Assembly (NCBI GenBank): GCA_002104905.1
Contig: MCFE01000057.1
Location: forward strand, 124,001-188,000
Direction: 5' to 3'
Source of the DNA: Basidiobolus meristosporus CBS 931.73
Taxonomy: Eukaryota > Fungi > Basidiobolomycota
Length of the DNA stretch: 64,000 bases
Every line of letters begins with the position of its first letter. The first letter of the stretch is position 1. Made by a program: the position numbers and the translations under genes. Positions 21,941 through 38,885 of this stretch are shown piece after piece. The notes below the pieces were generated by a model, which saw only the letters and a program-made list of their open reading frames with translations, ran no database searches and was not told where the DNA came from.

Positions 21941-24900
21941 ATGTCCGAAATACTTCCTATTCGTTTTCAAGAGCATGTTCAGGTTAGTGATTTTCTACGA
22001 AAAGTATACTTACATTTGCACGTATGTTTTAACAAGGAATTTCTACATACCCGCTCTTGACAGCTTCAAGCACTTGGTATCAATGCTGCCAACATCGGAT
22101 TTAACACATTGACGCTCGAATCCGATCGCTTCATTTGCGTTCGCGAGAAAGTTGGCGAGCAGAACCAAGTGGTTATTGTGGACTTGACTGATGTTAACAA
22201 CCTCATCAGAAGACCAATCACTGCCGACTCGGCTATCATGAATCCTACTTCAAAAATCATTGCATTGAAAGGTATGTCTAAAGCAACTCCGTTTTCGATA
22301 AAATGTAGAGCTAATATATATCTTTCTGCATGGAAGCTGGGCGTCAACTCCAGATTTTTAACCTCGACACCAAAAGCAAAGTCAAGAGCCATGTCGCGAA
22401 TGAAGATGTTGTTTTCTGGACTTGGATTTCCGATACAGTAATCGGACTTGTCACCGAAAATTCAGTTTATCATTGGTCCATAGAAGGATCCTCCGACCCC
22501 AGCAAAGTCTTTGATCGTCATAGCAGCTTAGGTGGCAGTCAAATTATCAGCTACCGTGTTAACCCAGAGGACAATTGGATGGTCCTTATCGGAATTTCCG
22601 CTCAGGTAGATCGATCTTTGGACTATTTTGTTGCCTCACCCCCATACTAATATTGTAAATGCTTTCTAGCAAGGTCGTGTGGTTGGTGCTATGCAGTTGT
22701 ATTCCAAAGAGAGAGCCGTAAGCCAGCCCATTGAAGGTCATGCTGCTGCTTTTGCCGAAGTTCAACTTCAAGATGCCGCTAGCCCCTCGAAACTCTTTGC
22801 TTTCGCAGTCAAAACTGCCACTGCAGCCAAGGTATTGGATTTCATGCAAAACTTGTCTAGTTGATCGGTGTATACTAACATCCTTTATGTAATAGCTCCA
22901 TATTGTGGAGATTGATCACAAGGATGAGAATCCCGTTTTCCAGAAGAAGGCTGTTGATGTTTTCTTCCCTCCCGAGGCGGTGAATGATTTCCCTGTTGCT
23001 ATGCAGATCAGCCACAAATATAATATCATTTACTTGGTCACCAAGTATGGTTTTATCCATTTGTATGATGTGGAAAGTGGAACCTGTGTATATATGAATC
23101 GCATCAGCGGTGATACCATTTTCGTTACTGCGGAGCACGAAGCTACTAGCGGAATTATTGGTGTTAATCGCAAAGGACAGGTATACTTCACACTAGACAT
23201 GTTGCCAGGAATCGTGGCGCTGACAACATTTGCTTAGGTACTTTCTGTGAGCATTGACGAAGACAACATCATCCCTTATATCTTGAATAACCTGGGAAAT
23301 CCTGATCTTGCTTTGAGACTTGCTTCTCGCAACAATCTTCCTGGTGCTGATGACATGTATGTCACCAGATTCAATCAGTTGTTCTTGTCGGGACAGTATG
23401 GTGATGCCGCAAAGGTTGCTGCCACCTCCCCCAGAGGTATTCTTCGTACTTCTCAAACTATTGAAAAGTTCAAGCAAGTGTATGTAGCACCTGGCCAGCT
23501 CTCGCCCATTCTTCAATACTTCAGCATCCTCTTGGAGAAGGGTGAACTTAACCAGTACGAATCTCTTGAGTTGGCTAGACCCGTGTTACAACAGGGTCGC
23601 AAACAACTACTTGAGAAATGGTTGAAGGAGGATAAATTGGAATGCAGTGAAGAGCTTGGAGATATTGTCAAGCAACACGACCTGACATTAGCCTTGTCTG
23701 TGTATTTGAGAGCTAACGTACCTAACAAGGTTGTTGCTTGTTTTGCCGAAACTGGACAATATAACAAAATCATCTTGTATGCCAAGAAAGTTGGATACCA
23801 ACCTGATTATGCTATGTTGCTGCAACATATCATGCGCCTCGACCCTGATAAGGGCGCTGAGTTTGCCACTTTACTCTACCGTGACGAAAATGGGCCCCTT
23901 CTTGATGTCGAGAGAATTACCGACATTTTCATGCAGCAAAACTTGGTTCAGCAAGTCACTTCGTTCCTGTTGGACGCCCTTAAGGATAATCTTCCCGAGC
24001 AAGGCAACCTGCAGACCAGACTTCTGGAGATGAATTTAATGCAAGCACCACAAGTTGCCGATGCCATCCTTGGTAATGAGATGTTTACTCACTACGATCG
24101 CCCGGCTATTGCCACTCTTTGTGAAAAGGCTGGATTGTATCAACGTGCGCTAGAACATTACACCGAAATTCAAGATATCAAACGTGTAATTGTTCACACT
24201 CATTTGCTCAATGCCGAATGGGTCGTCAACTACTTCGGTACCCTCTCTGTAGAACAATCACTTGAATGCCTTAAGGAAATGTTGAATCAGAACATCAGAC
24301 AAAACTTGCAAATCTGTGTTCAGATTGCATCCAAATACTCGGAGCAATTGGGTCCACACAATCTGATCTCCTTGTTTGAGGATTTCAATAGTTTCGAAGG
24401 ATTGTTCTACTATTTGGGCTCTGTAGTCAACTTCAGTCAAGATTCTGATGTTCATTTCAAGTACATCGAGGCTGCCTGCAGATCCGGTCAACTTAAGGAG
24501 GTTGAGAGAATCTGCCGGGAGAGTAATTATTACGATCCTGAGAAAGTCAAGAACTTCCTCAAGGAGGCCAAGCTCCCTGATCAGTTGCCTCTCATCATTG
24601 TGTGCGATCGATTTGATTTCGTACATGATCTCATCCTCTACTTGTACCACAATAGCATGTATAAGTTCATTGAGGTTTACGTGCAGAACGTCAACTCTAT
24701 GCGTACTCCTGTTGTAATTGGCGCTTTGCTTGATGTCGGATGTGAGGAATCTGTTATCAAGGATCTTCTGATGTCCGTTACCGGGTCAATTTCCATCGAG
24801 GAGCTTACCGAAGAATGCGAAAGCCGTGATAGACTCAAGCTATTGCTTCCATATCTTGAAGGAAAGGTTAACCAAGGAAGCCAAGAGCCCGGCGTATACA

Positions 24901-27305
24901 ATGCATTGGCCAAGATTTACATTGACAGCAACCATAACCCCGAGCAATTTTTGAGAGAAAACCAATTCTACGACCCCTTGCTTATCGGTAAATACTGCGA
25001 GAAGCGTGATCCTTATCTTGCTTATATTTCCTATGAGCACGGTCAATGCGATTTGGAGCTTGTTGGTATCACCAACGAAAACGATATGTTCAAACATCAA
25101 GCACGTTACTTGGTTAAACGCCGTGATCTAGACTTGTGGCAATATGTCTTGAATGCGGAGAATCCTCACAAGAGAGATTTGGTTGACCAAGTTGTGGGTA
25201 CCGCATTGTCCGAATCTCAAGACCCTGAAGAAGTTTCGGTTACTGTCAAGGCTTTCATGGCAGCTGATCTCCCCAACGAGTTGATTGAGCTCCTTGAGAA
25301 GATTATCTTGGAGAATTCTGCTTTCAGTGACAATAAGAATTTGCAAAACTTGCTTATTCTCACTGCGGTCAAGGCAGATAAAACCAAGGTCATGGATTAC
25401 ATTACTCGACTGAATAACTACGATGCTCCAGATATCGCGGAAATTGCCATCAGCAATGAGTTGTACGAAGAAGCATTCACCATCTACAAGAAGTATGATG
25501 TCAACACTAGCGCAATTGGTGTGCTGTTAGACAATATCGGTAGCATTGATCGTGGTTACGAGTTTGCTGAACGTTGTGATCAACCCGAAGTTTGGTCCAA
25601 ATTGGCCAAGGCACAGCTTGATGTCTTCCGAGTCAAGGATGCCATTGATTCCTATATTCGTGCACAAGATCCTACCAATTTCTTGGAGGTCATCAATGTT
25701 TCTTCTGAAGCTGACAAGTACGACGATTTGGTGAAATTCTTGCAAATGGCTCGCAAGCATACCAGAGAGCCTCTCATTGAAAGCGAACTTCTGTTTGCCT
25801 TCGCCAAGACCGAAAGATTGGCCGATTTGGAAGAGCTCCTCTCTTCACCAAATATTGCCAAGGTGCAAGTAATTGGTGATCGTTGCTTTGACAATGGAAT
25901 GTATGAAGCCGCCAAGATTCTTTATACCAATGTTTCTAACTGGGGTCGCCTCGCTACTACTTTGGTTCATCTTGGCGAATACCAAGCATCTGTTGACTGT
26001 GCTCGCAAGGCTAACAGCACCAAGGTCTGGAGAGAAGTTCACTCCGCGTGTATTGAACACAAGGAGTTCCGTCTCGCTCAAATTTGCGGTTTGAACCTGA
26101 TTGTCCACGCCGAAGAGCTTAACCAAATCATCCGTTTGTATGAAAACCAAGGATTTATTGATGAGTTGATGCAACTTCTTGAGGCCGGTCTCGGACTTGA
26201 AAGAGCTCACATGGGAATGTTTACCGAATTGGCTTGTATTTATGCCAAGTACAAGCCTGAGGTTATGATGGAGCACTTGAAGCTTTTCTGGTCCCGAATC
26301 AATATTCCCAAGGTCATCCGTGCTTGTGAGCAAGCACATATGTGGCCTGAGCTTGTCTTCTTGTATGTTCACTACGACGAGTATGACAACGCAGCCAACA
26401 CTATGATGAAGCGCTCCGCAGACGCTTGGGAGCACGCCAGTTTCAAGGATATCATCGTGAAGGTGACAAACCTCGAAATCTATTACAAGGCTCTTCGCTT
26501 TTATTTGGATGAGCATCCACTCCTTTTGAACGATTTGCTTGGTGCTCTCACACCTAGAATTGATCACACCCGTGTTGTTCAAATGTTCCGCAAGTCCGAT
26601 AACCTGCCCTTGATTAGATCCTACTTGGTATCTGTGCAAGAGACCAACAACCAAGCTATTAATGAGGCTTATCATGAGCTTCTTATTGAGGAGGAAGACT
26701 ACGAGGCCCTTAGACACTCCATTGAGCAACATTCAAACTTCGACAACATCGAATTGGCTCAAAAGCTTGAGAAGCACGAGCTTTTGGAATTCCGCAGAAT
26801 TGCGGCCCATTTGTACAAGGCCAACAAGAAATGGAAGCAGTCGATTTCTCTTTCCAAGGTTGATAAGCTCTATAGAGATACCATGGAGACCGCGTACGAA
26901 TCCAAGGATACCGAAACCTCCGAAGATCTTCTACGTTACTTCGTGGATATCGGCAAGCAAGAATGCTTCGCTGCTTGTTTGTATCTGTGCTACGATCTGC
27001 TTCGCCCTGACGTTGTCATGGAGTTGGCTTGGAGAGCTGGCTGGCAGGATTTTGCCATGCCATACTACATCCAGGTGGTTAGAGAGCTCTCTACTAAGGT
27101 CGAGATTCTTGAGAAACACGATCGTGAAAGATTAGAGAAGGATGCTGCTGAGAAGAAGCAGGCCATGGATGCGCCAATGATCAATCCTGGTGGGTTTGGT
27201 AACTCCCTCATGATTACAGCAGGCCCTGGAGGTATGATGGCACCCCAAGGAGGTATGGGGATGGGTACACCACAGATGGGTGGGTACAACATGTCGAATT
27301 ATTAA
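21941..27305 (+). CDS. CHC1: Clathrin heavy chain, several short 5' exons plus a final exon of about 4 kb
   Basis: [61 protein letters not shown]; CHCR repeats such as [20 protein letters not shown] and [12 protein letters not shown]. Confidence 0.99.
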
Positions 27306-28245
27306 ATCCAATGAAGTCACAATAATTTTCAACATATAAATATATTAATAAATACATGACAAGCATATTTATTTCATGAAATATGTCTTTGATTAACAAG
27401 AGAGGCCCATTCGATCTGATCGGAGATGAATCAAGGAAGCCACCGCTCAGTGGGTCTATGTGAACACTCAGTCAGTGTGAGATGCATCTAGATTACCTCT
27501 CCTCTACAGCTGAATGCGGGCAAGTATTCAAATATAATTAACACCCTTTAAGGAAGAACACCTCTGGCGAGGCTTCTACTTGTGTTTTCCTCTGATGTCA
27601 ACAAGCACAGATCAAGTCCGCAATCTAAAGTTGGCTATTGTCGTAAGTCATGGAGATGGACATTTACGAACAGAGGATCCCAAGTGAGCGAGATACGCGC
27701 ACTACCATAGGCCCGTCTTGATGATCATCGGGATCTGCAAGGGAGAAAAAGCACTTCGGAGAGAACGTATTCGGGTGGTGTGCTACTCTACCATAGCAGA
27801 TGGGAATATTCCAGAGGGACCATTTTTGGCTTGGATGGTTTGAAAGATCGTGAAGGCCAACGGTTTTGGGTGATATTGGTAGGTCGTATACGATCTTTCA
27901 GACGATTGCCGCAGGGCTTGCTTTGGAATGCTGTCGATTGAGTACCAGCGAGGCACCTAGAACCCAGTCTAAAGATACAGAAGACATGTTTGGTAAGTGG
28001 GAAATAGGCATCGTAGTATTGGACCTCAATATGACTTGATTCTACCAACTGAATTAGGCTATCCGCCAATCGAAGTGATGTAGTGGGCTTTCCTAAATTG
28101 GGGCTTGGCATGCAGTAATGAGAGTTTCAAGCATCGCCTAAAATTAGTGAGATTAAAAAGCTAAATCTCAATAAAGATACCTGCCTGCTTATAAGTATCC
28201 GTCCGGGCCTACACCCCCGCCAAGACTGTGCCCATCACTAAAACC

Positions 28246-28499
28246 ATGGCACGTCGGAGCAAAAGCGACATCTCGAAGCTTCGCGAAGCTTCGACTCCCT
28301 CAAGTTAGTCCAATCCATCATACAAATCTTCAACCCGGTCCCGGAAGAGGCCCCGGCTCAAGGCGATCCACAACCATTGGACTTTAAATTCAACAGCAAC
28401 GGCAAACTCCGGAATGCCGACGCGCTTCCCAGTTTCGACGAGTTGATGGTCAGTGAGAAGGTCGTTCGTGTCTCACTCACTCCCTCCATTGCTCTGTAG
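28246..28499 (+). CDS. Candidate microprotein A (about 64-69 aa) with the LPxFDEL...SLTP motif; probably one intron, 5' structure uncertain
   Basis: The frame ending at TAG 28497-28499 reads DPQPLDFKFNSNGKLRNADALPSFDELMVSEKVVRVSLTPSIAL*. ATG 28246 (aaaaccATGg, TATAAG at 28190) is in another frame. An intron from GTTAGT 28304 to AG 28347 or 28362 restores the frame. Confidence 0.6.
28273..28294. promoter_or_regulatory. Perfect 22-bp palindrome that also forms a perfect four-unit heat-shock-element-like array
   Basis: tcgaagcttcgcgaagcttcga = cGAAg cTTCg cGAAg cTTCg (28274-28293), also a 10-bp tandem duplication. Confidence 0.5.
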
Positions 28500-28744
28500 T
28501 TGACCCGCCTCGAATACAGCCCTCGAACTGTCGCAGGTCGATGATGTATATATTCCAAATCTTCATGAAAATTTAGTAATTTAATAACGATGTACACGTT
28601 GAGATTTGACACTGGGGAATTTATTTCACTTCCTGGTTGTAGATAAAAATACAATAAACTAAACTATTCACAGAGTGCTTATGTACAGGTGTAGGTGGGG
28701 TAGTGAGAAGCGTAGGGAATCATCTGGGCGCAGCCGTTAGTCAG

Positions 28745-29032
28745 TTAGATTGCAATGCGCGGCGTTAGTTGAACATGGATGGTCTGTTGGGTGTTCAGCA
28801 GATCCTCGAAGTTTGGAAGGGAATGTCTGTCCTCGATGATCCCGTTGGGATTGCATTTGAACAGCACCCAGTCGTCATATTCGGACACAGACGACTTGTC
28901 GCTCACTGTCTCGAAGGAGTTGGAGCTGAAGGATTTGGTATTAAAGCAATAGAGGAATGCGGAGATGGGGGGTTTATGCATTTGTTGGTACTCTCCAGAT
29001 ACCCGGCGTTTTAGATCTTTAAAGGTGAGCAT
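28745..29032 (-). CDS. Candidate microprotein B (95 aa) with the LPxFEDL...LTP motif
   Basis: MLTFKDLKRR...LFKCNPNGIIEDRHSLPNFEDLLNTQQTIHVQLTPRIAI*; TATAAAA at 29078-29084, about 45 nt upstream of ATG 29032. Confidence 0.72.
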   Translation of the reverse strand: MLTFKDLKRRVSGEYQQMHKPPISAFLYCFNTKSFSSNSFETVSDKSSVSEYDDWVLFKCNPNGIIEDRHSLPNFEDLLNTQQTIHVQLTPRIAI

Positions 29033-29852
29033 GATTAGGTGAGGTTCGTTGTGGAAAGTGTAGAAGGATTCTCCTCTTTTTATAACTTCGTCGATCCTGA
29101 TGTCAGTCACACCTATCACGGAATTCGAAAGTGAGACTTGCAACCGATCTGAGTAATCCGTATATGGGACTGCGATGACTAATCTACTGGTGATGCGTCA
29201 TTGGGGTCGAGAAGGAATAGCGCCAGAAAATGTTTGACATTCTTACTCGCTGCTGAGTCGCTCAGGAATTGGGAAGTTACCAAGCTGATTCAACAGGTGT
29301 AACTAGTGGGGGCTATATCATTTGTTGCGAGTGGTGAATCACTGCCCTTCCCCCTTAATTCTCAGCTTAGTGGGAATGTAGTGTTCTTATCAGTGATCAT
29401 GAGACTGCATTTACATCAGCACCAGAATCTAAGCTTTCGGATGCAGAATATCTCTGGAATCACCGGTGCCGAGAAAGTCGAGATTGTTCAATCCCAGCTT
29501 TCTCTAGATCCAATTACTCTGGACGTGCGGGCATGGTATCAGTACGTATTTTTGAAACCACCTTACGCATTCGGTACCTCGAATCGGCCGCCACTTCTTT
29601 CATTTGTGACTTTAGGCTGGGATTCGGTTCAATTGATGGAACCATATATATATAACGATGGCTGGATGAAATATCCGTTACTCCGAATCTCTGCTTGGTT
29701 TTATATAGTAGTATACATAGTGTTGATGGGTGGAAACCGTCATAATAATACAAGTGTGAAATCTACATTATAGGAATAATAACTGTAATAGTCTTTTGGC
29801 CAGAAATGATGTGCGTATGGTGCAAATGGGATAGAGATGCTCAAGAGCTTTG

Positions 29853-30116
29853 CTACTGCGCGACCACCGGGGTCAGTGAAAAGTGATAGGTTTTTCCATT
29901 GCTTAGCATGTCATCGAAGTGTGGCATGGATTGCAGCAACTGACGGCGAACCTTGCCACGGGAAATATCCACCTCCTCGACCCTAGCCGTCGACGGGAAT
30001 GTAGAACTGAAGCCAAATGTATTTGTCAAACTACTCACTTTGCCCTTTGGCTTGACTGCCTCGTCGTGGAAGGAGCATATCTTGCGGATTGATTTGATTG
30101 GGGAGAACTTGAACAT
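29853..30116 (-). CDS. Candidate microprotein C (87 aa) with the MPxFDDM...SLTP motif
   Basis: MFKFSPIKSIRK...LQSMPHFDDMLSNGKTYHFSLTPVVAQ*; TATAAAA at 30163-30169, about 46 nt upstream of the ATG. Confidence 0.72.
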   Translation of the reverse strand: MFKFSPIKSIRKICSFHDEAVKPKGKVSSLTNTFGFSSTFPSTARVEEVDISRGKVRRQLLQSMPHFDDMLSNGKTYHFSLTPVVAQ

Positions 30117-33100
30117 GGGGCGCTGTCAACGAGTGTGAGTAGCTGCGTGGGATAGTTTGTCTTTTTATACCGCAACACTGCCCCCACTACCTCATCTCCC
30201 TCGGGCAGACCCCTAATCAAAACACCACATTCGCTGCCAGTGTTACGGCAAAGCAGGTTTCTGGATTTCACTTCAACGCTTCGTGTCTCGACGCCGCATT
30301 GAATTCCTAATATGAGCTACCAAGGTACGAGGTCCATCATACCAGTATCCAAGAGGGAGCCTCTGGTGTAACAACAATTAGGTATCAATTAGGGATACAA
30401 AAGTCCATTTGGCAGCTGACTATGAACCTTGCACCATTTTGCTGCTGTACCCACTCAACACTTGACAAATCTCGCCTTGTCTAGTGTTTCAGCGGGAGAG
30501 CAATCATGGGTAAATGTGAAGATCACTCTAGGTTCTGCGACTTCCATATTAAGATGATGTGTTTCATAAATGGAGGAACATTCAATTAGGATTCTAGGGC
30601 CTAGTTGTTTAGTCAGGTGCATGGTAAAAGCGAGCAAAAGTAGTGGGATCCTCGATCACGAATGACTCAAGACATACTGCCTATTGGCCCATAATCTATA
30701 TGTGATCTCCAGAGCACATCATCCTCAAGGCAGGCGTGTGGTGTCTGATTGATTTCCGCAATAAAATATACGGATCACATTACTAAAACATATCACATGA
30801 CCAAGGGTCTCACTAGCTCGTTACCTGTTAGTGTTTAGAACCGTTCATCGCGTGATTTAAGCTCACAGCCTTACTAGCCATGAGGGTGGTCAGATGACAG
30901 GTGGTGTGGTATAAGTGACATACATTCTGACGAATATAGCGTAACCATCCGTTCCATGAAGACCACCATCATTCTTGCAATACCGCATATTGCGTGTCTA
31001 CTTGCCTCCCTGAACCTTCGATCATGGTTGAAAAGTATAGACGTTGGAAGGTGTCTGTAAGGGTAAATGAAAAGAGAGGAACAATGTGATCAGACTACGC
31101 TCATGAAAGTCGGCTTATAGAAATATTAACTTGTAATTTGCCAATCATGCTGATTGGGTGCAAACATCGTCTGTTCTGAAATCTGAGATAGCAATAGTTG
31201 ATGGATATCAAGCTGCTAGTTTCATTCATGCTTCTACCAAGGGGGGACATTGCGCATCATGAATCTGCAACTTTGTGAGCGCATTGTTGTAAACCCCACA
31301 CATGATCTAGTAACTGATGGCTGTCTTAGAAACTCATGAGAGTAGTTGGCTAATCTACACAATCTGGTGGAGATATGGCACTGCCCAATGGTCGGATGAA
31401 CATAAACTCCCTTGAAGATGATCACTTAAAAATACGAACAAACCATCATTGGAGATGGAGAATCACAACTTATTTTTGTTTAAACCACCAGATGCCATTG
31501 ATGCAAATCAAACAACTATCCCTTCCCCGTGAAGATACGAAAATCATGTCCACCCAAGGGTCACTTTAAGCAATCTTGAAAATATCTGCCAACTGGGATT
31601 TTCCGATTAATGGCTGCCATACAGAAATACATCAGACAATCCCTCAAATTTGACAACCAGATATCACAGTGGTATGCACGAAATTACATCCTCCAAGAGG
31701 CGCCAAATCAAAAATCTTGGATGTAAACACTATATGGCTCTCCAGACCATAATACCAAATCCTCAGTATAGTATCAACGGGCGAATATGGGATACTGCGC
31801 ATTACTATATCGATGGTCAGGTAGAACGTAAGCAAAGCTGACATCGCCACTGTATCTTGTTAAAGACGCAATTATTTATACCAACACAGTGGAGCATACT
31901 CTAAATGGTAAGAGATCCAAGATCAAAACAAACGTAAATCAACCCAGGTATACCGTCCACCAATGGCCTCAGGTCTATTGTGATTGAAAAGGAACACTAT
32001 CCAAAAGAAGAGAAATGTCCATGCTCCCGGTTACATTATCTTCCTTCGAAGCATCGTTACCAACAATGGACATAGAATCATCCTGGTTACGCTCAATCAT
32101 TGGTATGCTATTTTTGCATAGATCATATCGCTTTGTTTTCGCTAGTTGGTATTGGTTCGATTGAATTGCGGTTGGGGCCTACAAGCAAATCATGAAATTG
32201 ATGGTCCTCTTTTCAATGTGCATGTGGGATTATTAGTGAGTCGGATTACTCGAAATACACTGTTGCCCATCTAAAGGAGTTGGTAGACAAGTGTTGTAAG
32301 TATATGTAAAAAATCTCGTCGATCAAGGAGCCACAGGTTGCTTTTGAACGCTAAGTCTAGACGAGTCAAAAATAGGACATTTCTATCGGTAGGAGTGACT
32401 TTCGATATAGAATCGGCTGCTAAGCTAAAAATAGGAAGCCGCCTATTATGCCATCCACTACTGTTTTCACTCTATCTAATCCGAAAGCAATATCAATTAT
32501 AAGGTAGTGAATGTTTCGATTTGACCATTCACTATTGGTGGCAACGGATAGGTTGGCGGGTAGCCTGTTTCAATAGTTTACCACTAGCTCAACAGGCCTC
32601 TCCACTCTTTGTTGCTTGCTCTGCTTGAAGCATCTGCCAATGGTGACTGGGCGATTTAGTACTTAAGTGCTATTGATTCCATCGGTGTTTCTATATTAAA
32701 TCATGGTTTTCGAATTCATTTTCCAAAAAAGTGAAGCGCTACTATTGTAGATAACAGTATCCTGGCAAGGTATTCGAGAATTCCTAATGTCGAGGCATAT
32801 GGGGGTGTGGATCCGACATAAAAACATTGTTACCTTGGAAAGCATTTATTTGCTGTTCACATTTCATAAATAAACCAACCACTCTCTTTTTCCATTTCTC
32901 TCGTTCTCTCCTTTGTCTGGTTTCATCGGGTGCCTTGTACTAGTTCAACTTCTTTTTTTTGGTACCAATTAGACGCTGAAGAAAAACCCTGTCTCCTGTC
33001 TGTCCTTTTCTACATTGATACCAGCAATCCCTTCATACATCGAGATTTCAGTCTGAACTCGATATCCGTGCGACAGCTTTACCATTGTCCATATAATCAC

Positions 33101-33202
33101 AGGTAAGTCGGTGTTACACCGTACTACATCAAAGAATAGGATTCGGCAGTCTAACATGCGTTACCATCCAGTATCTTCGATATTGACAATAGAGTAGTTG
33201 CC

Positions 33203-36200
33203 ATGGGTTCAAACGGCACAATACCGTATGATCTAGTGACTCTTTCGTCACCCTCGGAGGATGATGTTACTCATGTCCTAGAGGACAACTTTGAACAAAA
33301 CAACACATATTTAAAGATCGGGGCCCACGTACTCCTCTCCCTGAATCACGGCCAAATATCCCCACGAAAGAGTGCTGAGTTGGAAGAATATATCAATGAT
33401 TTTAGAGATGCCCAGCCTACTTATGGCGATAGATTGAGGCCACACATATTCCAAACAGTCAGCCATGCCTACCTCGAGATGCGACGCACCGGTTACAACC
33501 AATCCATCGTATTCAGGTAATTGGGTGACATGATTCCAGAATATTCATGATGTCTGACATTTCTCTTTATCTAGCGGGGAGACCGGCAGTGGTAAATCCA
33601 CCAACAAATTCCTTGCCCTAGAAGCGTTGGGCAAGATAAGAGAGCCGTCTAAAAAGGAATCGCACGTCGTGAAGCTGATCACTAACGCGTGCAAGATCCT
33701 GGAAGCATTCGGGAACGCTGGAACGGTTAGAAATCCCAACGCCTCGCGGTTCGGAAGTTACATCGAGATTCAATTCAACGAGCGCGGTCGTATTCTGGGG
33801 TCCAAATTCTTGGATTACCTTTTGGAGAAGTCCCGGGTGACACAGCCGACCCACGGTGAGCAAAACTTCCATGTCTTCCACTACTTGCACAATGGGGCGT
33901 CCATCGACGAGAGGGTGCATTTCCATTTCGCCGATACCGCCGAGTTCTCCTACCTTCCTCAGAACTCCGCCTACATTAGAGAGGACGATGCAAGGAAGTT
34001 CCACGAGCTTCGTGACTGCATGAAGTCCCTTGGGCTTAACAAGAAATACCAGAACCAGATCTTTCGACTGTTGGCTGCTATCCTGCATCTGGGTAATCTC
34101 ACTTTCGTCGATGCGCACAACAAGAATCTCGAGGCGTCGTCTGTCAAGAATGTCGAAGTCCTGGATACGGTGGCGGAATTCCTCGGCGTTTCGACAGCAT
34201 CCCTCGAGAGTGTCTTGACCTACAAAACACAGCTGGTCAAAAAGGAGATGTGCACAATTTTCCTCGATGCAAAGCATGCCGAGATCCAGAGGGATAGCTT
34301 GGCAAGGGCTTTGTATTCCTTGTTGTTCAGTTGGATCGTGGAGTTTGTCAACACCAAGCTGTGCAGTGAGGAGCAAACGAACTTCATCGGTCTCGTGGAC
34401 ATGATGGGATTCCAAAACCGCTCGGTGGACTCCTTCAACCAGTTCTGCGTCAATTTCGCCAATGAGCGAATCCACAACTTCCTCAATCACCAGATATTCG
34501 AGTTGAACAACATCGATTATGAGGATCAAGGAATCGCAGTCCCCAATATTGCCTACTTCGACAACTCCTCATGTATCGATCTCATCATGAAACCGAAGAC
34601 CGGCCTCATCTCGATCATGGACAATCTCGCCAGCAAGTCGGAGAATGAGGTGTCGGACCAGGAGCTGCTCGAGGCTCTGGAGAACGCACAAAATAGCCAC
34701 GACAGCTTTATCAGTTTCCCGGGCGATTCGCACTCTGGATTTGCTATCCGGCATTATGCTGGCAAGGCCAGCTATTCAATCCAAGGATTCATGGAGAAGA
34801 ATACCGAAAACATCGGAACGGACTTCATCGACCTTTTCCGTGGTGGCTCGGACGTGAAACCTACTAGCAACTCCTTTATTGCCGGCCTGTTCTCCAACAA
34901 AACCGTTTCCTACCAATCGCATCCAAGAAACAATGCTACCATCGTGGGCGCCCAACAATCCGCCGCCCCCACAAGGAAGCCCTCCATGCGACGTACCAGA
35001 AAGAAAGACAGCAACAAAGAGTGCAGGGCCATGCAGTTCCAGCAGGCCGTGAGCGAGCTTATCGAAACTCTGGAGGAAACCACTCCCTGGTTTGTGATTT
35101 GCATCCAGCCCAATATCGAGGGGAACCCCAATCAGTTCGACTTCCATCATGTCAAGTCGCAAGTGCGGCGTCTGGGCCTGAGTCAGATTGCTGAACGCCA
35201 GCGTTTCGAATATACGTCGTCAGTCGACTACGATAGCTTTGTGAGACGCTACGGAAGTCATGTCGATTTGCAGGAGCCAGCGTCGCGGGAGGCAATGGAG
35301 CAGCTCCGAACGAACCTCGGTTGGTCGGAACGTGACATGATGCTTGGAAGCACCAAAGTATTTTTGAACTTTGCTGCTTGGAAATACCTTGAAGATCAGT
35401 TACGCGCTGCGGAAAATGAGGACAGATTGCGCCGTAAATCCACCGGTACAAACGTTGAGACTATGAGCCAAGCTGCCCCCTCCATTTTTACAAACAGCGG
35501 GACGGTAAATGAAAGTCGAGAATATTTCCCGGCCACGGGTCGTGTTTCTTCCCCTGGACCAGTGCCTCGGGAGTATCCGCTTTCATCCAACCCAGTGGAC
35601 AATCGGTCATTTTATAGCGGGGCCGAGTCCTACTACAGCGATGAGGATTACTACGAGCGGGAATCCAGTTCGATAGCCGGGACGGAGCCATATCCCCTCA
35701 AGCCGGTTGGGCTGCAGGAGGTCAAGAGGGAAGCAGAGGTATTTGATCCCAAGGAACACCAGGAGCTCAGCAAGCCTAGAAAAAGATGGTTGTGTTGCAC
35801 CTGGGCGTTGACATTCTGGATCCCCACATTTACCCTAAGTATGTGTGGTAGAATGAAGCGACCAGATGTTCAGATCGCTTGGCGTGAAAAGACCGCGTTA
35901 TGCATGATCATCTTCTTCCTATGTATTTTCGTCCTCTTCTTCCTTATCTTCTTTGGCCGACTTATCTGCCCCAGACAGTATGTTTATTCATCAACCGAAC
36001 TTGCAAGACATACATCAGCCGATAGCCCGTTCGTGTCCATTCGTGGAGAAGTGTTCACCATCAAAAACTTCGTCCACTACACCGTTCCGGCCTCGGCCAT
36101 CATCACGGAATATGCAGGCAAGGAAGTTGGCGATCTACTCTTTCCAATGCAGATCAGCATGGTTTGTGATGGGTATGATGGCCCGATCGATCCAGCGGTA

Positions 36201-38885
36201 GTTATGAACAACTACACCGATGTGAATCACAAGTATCACGATTTCCGTTATCACGTAATGGGGAACCAAATGACCAACTTCTATCAACACAATGTGATGG
36301 CATTCATGCGTGCCAAATATCTAGAGGGACAAATGGCCTATTCTACCCAAACCGTACGTGATTTTGGGCGAAAGGGAGAGTTCTGGGCCATCCTCGACAA
36401 CATGGTGTATGATTTGACTGCTTATGTTAACGGGCATGTGGGAACTCTATTCCCACCTGGAGCGCAGACGCCCAGGGTGAACACTCAGTTTCTGGATCCG
36501 TACCTAGTTGATTTGTTTAGGTACAACCTCGGGAGCGATATTACACATCGGTTCAATAATTTGTACCTCGATAAACCCGAACTTAAGCAGAAGATGAAGG
36601 TTTGTCTTCAGAACTTATTCTACAAAGGAGTTGTCGATACCCGAAACTCGCCACAGTGCAAGTTCTCGAATTACATCCTGCTGGCATGTACGATCTTCTT
36701 GGGCTCGGTGATCTTCTTCAAGTTCTTGGCCGCTCTGCAGCTTGGTTCTCGCCGTGAGCCCGAGGAACACGATAAATTCGTCATTTGCCAGGTGCCCTGT
36801 TATACCGAGGGCGAGGAATCCCTGAAAAACACCATCGACTCGCTAGCCGTATTGAAATATGACGACAAACGAAAGCTACTTTTCATCATTGCCGATGGTA
36901 TGATTATTGGTGGTGGTAACGACAAGCCCACGCCAAGAATTGTGCTGGATATCCTAGGTGTGGACGAAAGCGTGGATCCCAAACCAGTTGCCTACAAGGC
37001 CCTTGGTGAGGGAAACCAACAACTGAACATGGCCAAGGTTTATACCGGTCTGTACGAATGCTCAGGACACGTAGTGCCATTCATGGTGGTCGTCAAGGTC
37101 GGAAAGCCCAGTGAACGCTCCAAACCTGGAAATCGTGGCAAGCGTGACTCGCAGCTTATCATCATGAATTTCTTCAACAAGGTCCACTTCGACCGACCAA
37201 TGTGTCCTTTGGAGTTGGAGATGTACCACACGCTGAAGAATGTCATCGGTGTCGATCCATACTTCTACGAGTATGTCCTCATGGTGGATGCCGATACCAT
37301 TGTCATGCCCGATTCTCTCAACCGAATGGTGTCCTGTATGCTCAACGACAGCAAGATCATGGGTATTTGCGGTGAGACGGAGTTGTTGAACGGAAAGGCC
37401 ACCATCACCACCATGATTCAGGTCTACGAATACTTCATCTCTCATCATCTGGCCAAGGCTTTCGAATCCCTCTTTGGCTCGGTCACCTGCTTACCCGGTT
37501 GCTTCTCCATGTATCGTTTCCGAACTCCGGTTAAGGCGCAGCCCTTGCTGATCGCCGATTGCATTGTCAATGATTATTCCGAGAACAAGGTGGACACTCT
37601 TCACAAAAGGAATCTGTTGTCGTTGGGTGAGGATCGTTACCTGACCACGCTAATGTTGAAGCACTTCAACTACAACAAGATGACCTTCACACCGGATGCC
37701 AAGTGCAAGACCAACGCCCCAGATCAGTGGTCGGTCCTACTCTCCCAGCGTCGTCGTTGGATCAACTCCACGGTTCACAACCTGTTCGAATTGGTGTATC
37801 TACCCAGACTCTGTGGTTTCTGCTGTTTCTCTATGCGCTTTGTGGTCATGATCGATCTTATCTCCACGATGATCATGCCCATTCTATGCATCTACCTGGG
37901 CTACCTGATTTACTCCATTTGCACCGACACTTCCAACCTCCCACTCACCTCAATTATCCTGCTTGCCGCTATTTATGGCCTCCAGGTGATCATTTTCCTT
38001 GTCAAGCGACAATGGCAACACATCGGCTGGATGATCGTCTACTTGATCTCCCTTCCCATTTTCAGTTTCTTCCTTCCGGTTTATTCCTTCTGGCATTTCG
38101 ATGATTTCTCGTGGGGTAATACCCGTGTGGTTGTCGGGGAATCCGGAAAGGTCGCGCACGTCGCGACGGAGGAGAAGTTTGATCCTGCTAGCGTTCCTCT
38201 GAAGAAGTGGAGCGAGTATGAGCTGGAGAATTGGGAGATTGCCTCGCAGATGTCTGACTCCAAAGATTCTAGAGTGATTGGCTCCATGCACTCCGAGAAC
38301 CGTAGCAGAAGCCAAATCTCCCGAGTATCTCGCGCGGACGCACCATCGCCATATCAAAGCATGTCGACCCTGCCTAGGTATGGCTTCCCTGCGGAAGCAT
38401 ATTCTTCAAGGAACAATTCCCGCGAGAGATCCATGTCCCCAGGCTATGCAGGCCTGCCAAGATCCATGAGCCGTGCGACGTCCTATGATCGCGCCCCCAG
38501 CTCGAATCCCTACTCCACCGTCAATTCAAGCTCAGATATGAGGTTGCCAGTCAGAAGCTTCAGCTCATCGTCTTTGAATCCAAATAACCCATTCTCCAAC
38601 TATAACGGGGCCGCTATTCCTCCCGAAGCTGGGGAGTCTTATTTCCCAGAGCCGCAAGTGAATGTGTACCCAGCCTCCAATCCAAGCACCCCGGGCATTC
38701 CAAACCTTCCCAGTGACGAGGAGATCCTGCAAGAGGTCCGCACAATCCTATCTACGGCCGATCTAATGTCTATCACCAAAAAGCAAGTCCGTGATGAATT
38801 GACCCACTTCTTTGGAGTGGACATGACCATCCGAAAGGAGTATATCAACAACTGCATTGATATGATACTTCAAGGGCAACTGTAA
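33203..38885 (+). CDS. Chitin synthase with N-terminal myosin motor-like domain (class V type), cytochrome b5-like region and DEK_C domain; one coding intron near 33517-33572
   Basis: P-loop GETGSGKS, NPNASRFG, QFCVNFANE; catalytic motifs NRGKRDSQ, VDADT, CGET, LGEDRYLTT, QRRRW; C-terminal LPSDEEILQEVRTIL...TKKQVR. A likely 5'-UTR intron lies at 33103-33171 (GTAAGT...CTAAC...CAG). Confidence 0.97.

Follow-up and report, generated by a model that had tools for sequence, protein, structure and literature searches.

Three small genes flanked by those for clathrin heavy chain and chitin synthase

The stretch analysed here, referred to as the window, comprises 64 kb of contig MCFE01000057.1 of Basidiobolus meristosporus CBS 931.73 (GenBank:GCA_002104905.1), and coordinates are counted from its first base. 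A cluster of three small genes, designated A (plus strand), B and C (both minus strand), was located at bp 28246–30116, with the open reading frame (ORF) of A ending at bp 28499; all three very probably belong to a real, protein-coding family. The cluster was flanked by the gene for clathrin heavy chain (bp 21941–27305; GenBank:ORY02425.1) on one side and by that for a myosin-motor chitin synthase (bp 33203–38885) on the other. In the 5.9-kb interval between these two genes the sole GenBank gene call was gene B, whose annotated protein (P0001) maps to this contig. A first-pass annotation of the window had described the family as unannotated, which holds for A and C but not for B.

The same annotation had reported three ORF ends with alignable tails, and these were present at the positions and with the sequences it had quoted. 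The tails of A, B and C shared, without gaps, the pattern LPxF[DE][DE][LM]-11 residues-LTPx[IV]Ax-stop, in which the spacing was identical in all three, as had been claimed, with 16 residues from the Pro of LPxF to the Leu of LTP and 4 residues from LTP to the stop. When aligned with BLOSUM62 without gaps and anchored at the stop, the pairs A–B (38 amino acids, aa), A–C (25 aa) and B–C (25 aa) scored 9.5, 7.2 and 8.1 standard deviations (SD) above shuffled controls, respectively, and the observed scores were attained by none of 20,000 shuffles. A regular expression of the motif found 3 matches in the six-frame translation of the window versus 0 in each of 100 shuffled windows.

Nucleotide similarity among the three genes was not detected by blastn, whereas tblastx aligned A with B over 41 aa (44% identity, E 2e-9) and B with C (E 3e-5), in agreement with the earlier view that the motif is conserved at the protein level. 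These results suggest that A, B and C are old duplicates held together at the protein level, since the paralogues have lost nucleotide similarity and yet the P, F, L, T, P and A of the tail are invariant. An independent hidden Markov model (HMM), built from six relatives outside the locus only (external-only HMM) and run on the six-frame translation of the window, matched exactly three places, B (E 1e-20), C (E 4e-15) and A (E 1.5e-10), the next match having an E of 0.5. A repeat or transposon origin of the cluster was rejected, because the copies had no nucleotide similarity and no repeats or Rfam families were found in the region from 27.3 to 33.3 kb.

Gene B (bp 28745–29032, minus strand) is a coding sequence (CDS) of 95 aa with a basic head, MLTFKDLKRRVSGEYQQM, a linker rich in Ser, Thr and Asn, and a tail extending from about residue 55 to the stop; the external-only HMM aligned to it from the annotated Met to the stop. 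A mechanically called ORF starting at TTG (bp 28745–29143, minus strand; 132 aa) would add 37 codons (bp 29033–29143). This extension contains a TATA box, TATAAAAAGA (bp 29075–29084, minus strand), which starts 52 nt upstream of the B ATG, and the orthologues begin at the annotated Met; therefore, the extension was regarded as promoter rather than coding sequence, and the 132-aa ORF was rejected as the true B protein. Gene C (bp 29853–30116, minus strand) is an 87-aa CDS absent from the GenBank annotation, with a basic head, MFKFSPIKSIRKICSFHDE, a linker and the tail MPHFDDML...SLTPVVAQ-stop, and was aligned by the external-only HMM over its full length, from Met to stop. The same 10-mer as that of B was found at bp 30160–30169 (minus strand), starting 53 nt upstream of the C ATG. 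TATA boxes had been placed 45–50 nt before each ATG; they were indeed present before all three, at distances of 52, 53 and 56 nt (the last for A, see below). Beyond the TATA box, no promoter motifs common to the genes were found.

Gene A was more complex. Its family-matching ORF end (bp 28377–28499, plus strand) lies in a stop-to-stop frame (bp 28242–28499) that is open for 85 codons (bp 28242–28496) and ends in ...FKFNSNGKLRNADALPSFDELMVSEKVVRVSLTPSIAL-stop, but no in-frame ATG was found ahead of the tail in this frame. The last ~40 residues alone matched the family, with the external-only HMM covering profile positions 50–89. A has lost none of the invariant tail residues and its stop lies at exactly the same place, so that selection has acted on this gene for most of its history. 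A candidate start was found at bp 28246–28303 (plus strand), where an ATG in a good AAAACCATGG context reads MARRSKSDISKLREASTPS, with a net charge of +3. A TATAAG box (bp 28190–28195, plus strand) starts 56 nt upstream of it, and this spacing, matching that of B and C, supports bp 28246 as the start of A. However, this ATG and the tail are in frames that differ by one base, and the ATG frame meets a stop at bp 28306–28308.

Two explanations of this offset were considered. An intron in gene A had been proposed before, and two in-frame GT..AG candidates do exist, bp 28304–28347 (44 nt) and bp 28304–28362 (59 nt) on the plus strand, but both are G+C-rich in their 3′ half and contain no CTRAY branch site. 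Introns nearby, as given by the best clathrin model, are 57–81 nt long and A+T-rich, most of them with CTAAT, CTAAC or CTGAC, and the chitin synthase intron, for which the length of the annotated protein allows a single solution, measures 58 nt and is A+T-rich with CTGAC. Judged from these features, gene A could be spliced, but the case for it is weak. Otherwise, a discrepancy of one base between the two frames would lie within bp 28249–28303; it could be due to either of two slippage-prone sites in the frame overlap, an A4 run (bp 28261–28264) and a 10-nt tandem direct repeat (bp 28275–28294; GAAGCTTCGC / GAAGCTTCGA). As the B. meristosporus assembly is PacBio-based (PMC7466969), a real frameshift and an error in the consensus are equally plausible. 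The predicted protein would be ~85 aa, the usual size in the family, if read continuously, and 64–69 aa if spliced. Gene A may be a pseudogene; almost as probably it is intact and mis-assembled by one base, and that it is spliced seems rather doubtful.

Relatives in Basidiobolus and the head-linker-tail architecture

A profile of the three tails (A1) was compared exhaustively with 1.84 billion cluster representatives. Seven proteins of 79–133 aa were returned, namely B itself, five proteins of Basidiobolus ranarum (P0002, P0003, P0004, P0006 and P0007; 84–126 aa) and one doubtful repeat protein from an ENA assembly. The search proposed by the first-pass annotation thus did find further homologues, the lack of which would have counted against its reading, whereas the similar tail that it mentioned in larger Dikarya proteins was not found, there being no match larger than 133 aa and none from Dikarya. 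A word-index search with the family profile (A2) added P0008 from B. ranarum and P0009 from another contig of B. meristosporus (K493DRAFT_319734). The word-index search with B as query returned only B itself, and scans of metagenome contigs with the B-type and D-type alignments (see below) returned nothing. In the ENA metagenome protein (P0005, 133 aa; E 3e-5), KRVHSSLPHGDDLLQRD is repeated in tandem, four times in full and a fifth time in part; its core, SLP-x-[ED][ED]LL, is similar to the motif of the family except that Gly replaces Phe, and the match was judged to be probably a chance one inflated by the repeats. So far as public proteomes show, the family appears to be confined to Basidiobolus.

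An alignment of the family (A3) extended over the whole length of the proteins, which are 79–95 aa in size and made up of an N-terminal head, a linker and a C-terminal module. The B-type head reads M-x-x-phi-K-x-L-K-R-[RK]-phi-S-x-[ED]-Y-x-x-phi, the C-type head M-phi-K-phi-x-x-x-K-[SA]-phi-R-[KN]-I-x-S-F-[HR]-D-E and the D-type head, found in P0004, P0008 and P0009, M-[LG]-C-[IV]-P-C-L-[KQ]...Y-[QH]-P-phi, the B and D heads being mutually alignable (M-L-x-phi-x-x-L-K...Y-x-x-phi). All three D-type proteins have Cys3 and Cys6 and a head with a net charge of 0, whereas the heads of B and C types are without Cys at positions 3 and 6 and have a net charge of +2 to +5. The linker is rich in Ser, Thr and Asn and fast-evolving. 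The C-terminal module, of ~40 residues and predicted to fold as strand-strand-helix-strand, reads phi-x-C-[ND]-x-x-G-x-I-x-[ND]-R-x-x-LPxF[ED][ED][LM]L-x5-phi-x-phi-x-LTPx[IV]A-x-COOH and is therefore longer than the motif noticed at first; the tails of A, B and D begin with phi-x-[CF]-[ND]-x-x-G-x-[IL]-x-[ND]-[RKA].

Between orthologues, identity was 58–71% in the tail, 50–60% in the head and 35–44% in the linker, and both the start Met and the stop position were conserved. The earlier description of a small-protein family was borne out by the size (~80–95 aa), the conservation at the protein level and the homologues. Its description of the N-termini as unrelated and of low complexity was not, because the heads are conserved within subtypes and alignable between them, and the term "motif-only" does not fit proteins that have a conserved head as well and that can be aligned with their orthologues over the whole span from Met to stop.

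B has its orthologue in P0002, with 57% identity and the same start and stop, and P0006 and P0007 resemble C over their entire length, sharing both head and tail with it. In B. ranarum, a partial clathrin heavy chain (KAK9695545), P0002 (KAK9695546) and P0006 (KAK9695547) have consecutive records, each reported on a 7,044-bp contig, which shows that the order clathrin, B, C is conserved between B. meristosporus and B. ranarum. With regard to function, the adjacency of B and C to the clathrin gene was treated as coincidental. A second adjacent pair of a B-like and a C-like gene occurs in B. ranarum (K7432_007080/007081). Identity between B. meristosporus and B. ranarum is 95% for clathrin versus 57% for B, indicating that the microproteins evolve much faster than their neighbour. 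The subtypes, to judge from these comparisons, are older than the split of the two species, so that the age ascribed to the family at first is supported within the genus but not beyond it.

It was also noticed that each subtype is represented in B. ranarum by two diverged copies (P0002 and P0003 for B, P0006 and P0007 for C, P0004 and P0008 for D) and that the B-C pair occurs twice there, on different contigs, which points to duplication on a large scale in this strain or to its genome being a hybrid. P0003 (K7432_007080) is family-like through ...LPGFEELLNNEQTIQ, after which 45 unrelated residues replace the V-x-LTPxIA-stop; the likely cause is a frameshift, a missed intron or a mis-annotation in this record.

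The divergence between the species also bears on the view that the cluster is non-functional DNA, made up of chance ORFs or of decaying relics of one duplicated gene and known from ab initio calls only. Fast evolution would be expected of such DNA, and the absence of an in-frame ATG from A, the absence of A and C from the GenBank annotation and the aberrant C-terminus of P0003 point the same way. However, the orthologues of B and C keep start, stop, head and tail while the linker drifts, paralogues saturated at the nucleotide level keep six tail residues and their exact distance to the stop, and the tails stood 7–9.5 SD above the shuffle controls. We consider this view very improbable for the cluster, and plausible for A alone.

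Taken at the level of sequence, the cluster appears to represent a genuine orphan family of small proteins restricted to Basidiobolus, with two unannotated members at the locus, and any function assigned to it is a guess. For the annotation of B. meristosporus the gain is a clearly conserved gene, C, and a probable gene or pseudogene, A. In addition, one family with a head, a linker and a tail now unites eight "hypothetical proteins" scattered over two species. Microproteins restricted to one lineage are usually dismissed as annotation noise; here start, stop, both ends and gene order are conserved, which makes the set suitable for experiments. The Basidiobolus lineage is early-diverging and includes opportunistic pathogens. 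If the tail were a new binding module, the family would show young small genes arising and diversifying in an early-diverging fungal lineage.

Predicted structure and possible modes of action

Structure was predicted by AlphaFold2 with the family alignment in two independent runs, for P0009 and for B. In both runs the tail was predicted to contain a strand and a bridge, after which F[ED][ED][LM]L formed a short helix and phi-x-V-x-L the last strand, with a predicted local distance difference test score (pLDDT) of ~80, whereas the head and linker were predicted to be disordered (pLDDT <60). In the model of B, strands were placed at residues 55–58 and 84–87 and the helix at residues 75–80, with pLDDT ~81 over residues 60–80.

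Comparison with known families gave little. A Pfam search with A, B, C and seven relatives at E up to 10 found no family at the gathering threshold, the sole row being a chance match to TED_complement (13 bits versus a cut-off of 22), and a sequence profile run against PDB gave chance matches only (best E 0.4, to IbpA). The AlphaFold2 model compared with PDB had a best E of 9.8 in Foldseek and no match with Z ≥2 in wide, exhaustive VIA-align searches. The ESM Atlas feature search returned nothing for P0009 and, for B, only families of beta-grasp type, with scores of 0.77–0.82, a range that shuffled proteins reach. The C-terminal half of such domains (PB1, CIDE-N, GRHL1_C and TDP-43_N) does offer a likeness, with its strand-turn-strand-helix-strand order, acidic helix and final phi-x-phi-x-phi strand. 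However, the N-terminal half is missing or disordered in the family, and neither Pfam nor Foldseek nor VIA-align gave a match. A complete PB1, CIDE-N or beta-grasp fold was rejected, as the models contain no more than strand-(bridge)-helix-strand, confined to the last 40 residues, and the resemblance of the predicted tail to the second half of a beta-grasp fold, with the first half absent, is a lead only.

We tentatively explain the locus as three tandem paralogues of a coding family so far confined to Basidiobolus, possibly of mini-adaptors, with two conserved ends. The mechanism that could go with this, a mini-adaptor or regulator tethered to a membrane, is a possibility that we regard with some doubt, its steps being inferred: membrane association, acylation, phosphorylation and partner binding. 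The head would hold the protein at the membrane, in D types by S-acylation of the cysteines and in B and C types by electrostatic binding of the basic head; the basophilic RRxS/RKxS sites might switch off this binding; and the C-terminal module would bind a partner or pair with another family member. Such small adaptors or regulators would be expressed from the TATA-box promoters.

The idea of an anchor comes from the finding that a Cys-Cys and a basic head occupy homologous positions, as palmitoyl and polybasic anchors do. Acylated heads are known from the Src-family kinases Fyn and Fgr (MGCxxC), yeast Vac8 (MGSCCSCLKD) and GAP-43 (MLCC); the beginnings of the D types, MGCVPCL or MLCIPCLK, resemble these. 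The swap of Cys for basic residues is known from Ras-type anchors, to which the basic heads of B and C can be likened. With regard to the SH4-type pattern, Gly2 followed by Cys within the first ~6 residues, P0008 begins with MGCVPC, P0004 and P0009 begin with MLCIPC and have no Gly2, and B and C have neither.

Several observations weigh against such a tether. P0008, which fits the pattern for myristoylation at Gly2, is the only family member with Gly2, and two of the three D heads have Leu2 and would therefore carry no myristate. The copies in the window, A, B and C, are without such cysteines, B and C having neither Cys3 nor Cys6. Homology to the acylated heads does not extend beyond ~8 residues. 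When an amphipathic helix was sought in the heads, the hydrophobic moment was not significant against shuffles and gave no support to a head of that kind. Finally, the module itself is small, was modelled with moderate confidence (mean pLDDT 61–65, predicted template modelling score ~0.3) and has no structural neighbour; it may fold only on binding.

The same heads and the predicted disorder can be read in another way, in which the proteins would be soluble, disordered regulators made up of short linear motifs. The tail would inhibit a conserved enzyme competitively, as the first-pass annotation had thought possible, or serve as a docking peptide for it; the T-P, which that annotation had taken as a possible kinase site, and the RRxS/RKxS of the head would be phospho-switches, and no membrane anchor would be needed. 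AlphaFold2 predicts the proteins to be mostly disordered, the T-P is invariant, a basic-x-x-S occurs in B-type and C-type heads, the heads show no significant amphipathic moment, and the acidic F[ED][ED][LM]L core is similar to many docking motifs. In size, disorder, basophilic Ser sites and an acidic-hydrophobic motif, the family also resembles PKI, ENSA/ARPP-19 and the tail of RCAN/calcipressin, but no sequence relationship to these or other known inhibitor families could be detected.

Established docking consensuses were compared by eye with the tail, and none of those checked fitted. The clathrin box of ELM, L-[IVLMF]-x-[IVLMF]-[DE], would point to a clathrin adaptor, which was rejected because all nine aligned members have L/M-P-x-F-[DE], with Pro at position 2. 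The T-P-x-[IV]-x-phi stretch of the family is reminiscent of the TTPSVVVH of RCAN, and the consensus for calcineurin docking (PxIxIT) is P-x-[IVLF]-x-[IVLF]-[TSHEDQNKR]; the tail, however, ends in P-x-[IV]-A-[ILMQ]-COOH, so that nothing follows the motif at the sixth position, and C-type proteins end with Q at position 5, and this docking was likewise rejected. The site consensuses of mitogen-activated protein kinases (MAPK; P-x-[ST]-P) and cyclin-dependent kinases (CDK; [ST]-P-x-[KR]) were not matched, since the T-P is preceded by S, Q, N or T at position –2 and followed by A at position +3; the invariant T-P is a minimal [ST]-P only. The consensus of the LC3-interacting region (LIR) gave no fit either. 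In addition, the conserved tail is 40 residues long with a predicted strand-helix-strand, not a single short motif, and Cys3 and Cys6 of the D heads would be left unexplained. Soluble regulators of this kind, the main rival of the membrane tether, seem somewhat unlikely.

A third reading takes the proteins as precursors of processed peptides, either pheromones or ribosomally synthesised and post-translationally modified peptides (RiPPs) of the MSDIN/cycloamanide kind, with the prolines as sites of cleavage or cyclisation and the paralogues as variants. The genes are indeed small, multi-copy, tandemly duplicated and clustered, with invariant prolines 18 residues apart, and Basidiobolus is rich in secondary metabolism and produces cyclic peptides (PMC7466969). 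The segment between the prolines is nevertheless the best conserved rather than hypervariable, so that conserved and variable regions are reversed relative to MSDIN-type precursors, and the conservation of the head is unlike that of RiPP leaders. The proteins have no signal peptide, Kex2 site or CAAX box, and the neighbours, clathrin heavy chain and chitin synthase, include no processing enzyme such as a prolyl oligopeptidase, a methyltransferase or a DUF3328-type enzyme. MSDIN-like precursors were rejected on these grounds, and peptide precursors in general are highly improbable.

The most far-reaching form of the adaptor explanation is that the 40-residue tail is an undescribed autonomous interaction module, carried by genus-specific mini-adaptors of at least four subtypes (A–D) that are anchored by lipid or charge, and that the clathrin-adjacent B-C pair takes part in membrane traffic or in the biology of the cell wall and septum. 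We regard this form as improbable.

Observations on the flanking regions

Upstream of the chitin synthase gene, ~3 kb (bp 30170–33200) contained no annotated gene, Pfam-matching ORF, Rfam match or repeat, which is an unusually long empty promoter region for a window as gene-dense as this one. For the 5′ part of the clathrin heavy chain gene, the best intron model (bp 22272–22336 plus other introns), inferred solely from the annotated protein length, had one intron ending in AAG instead of YAG, and its 5′ splice sites were varied, reading GTTAGT, GTATGT, GTAGAT, GTATTG and GTATAC.

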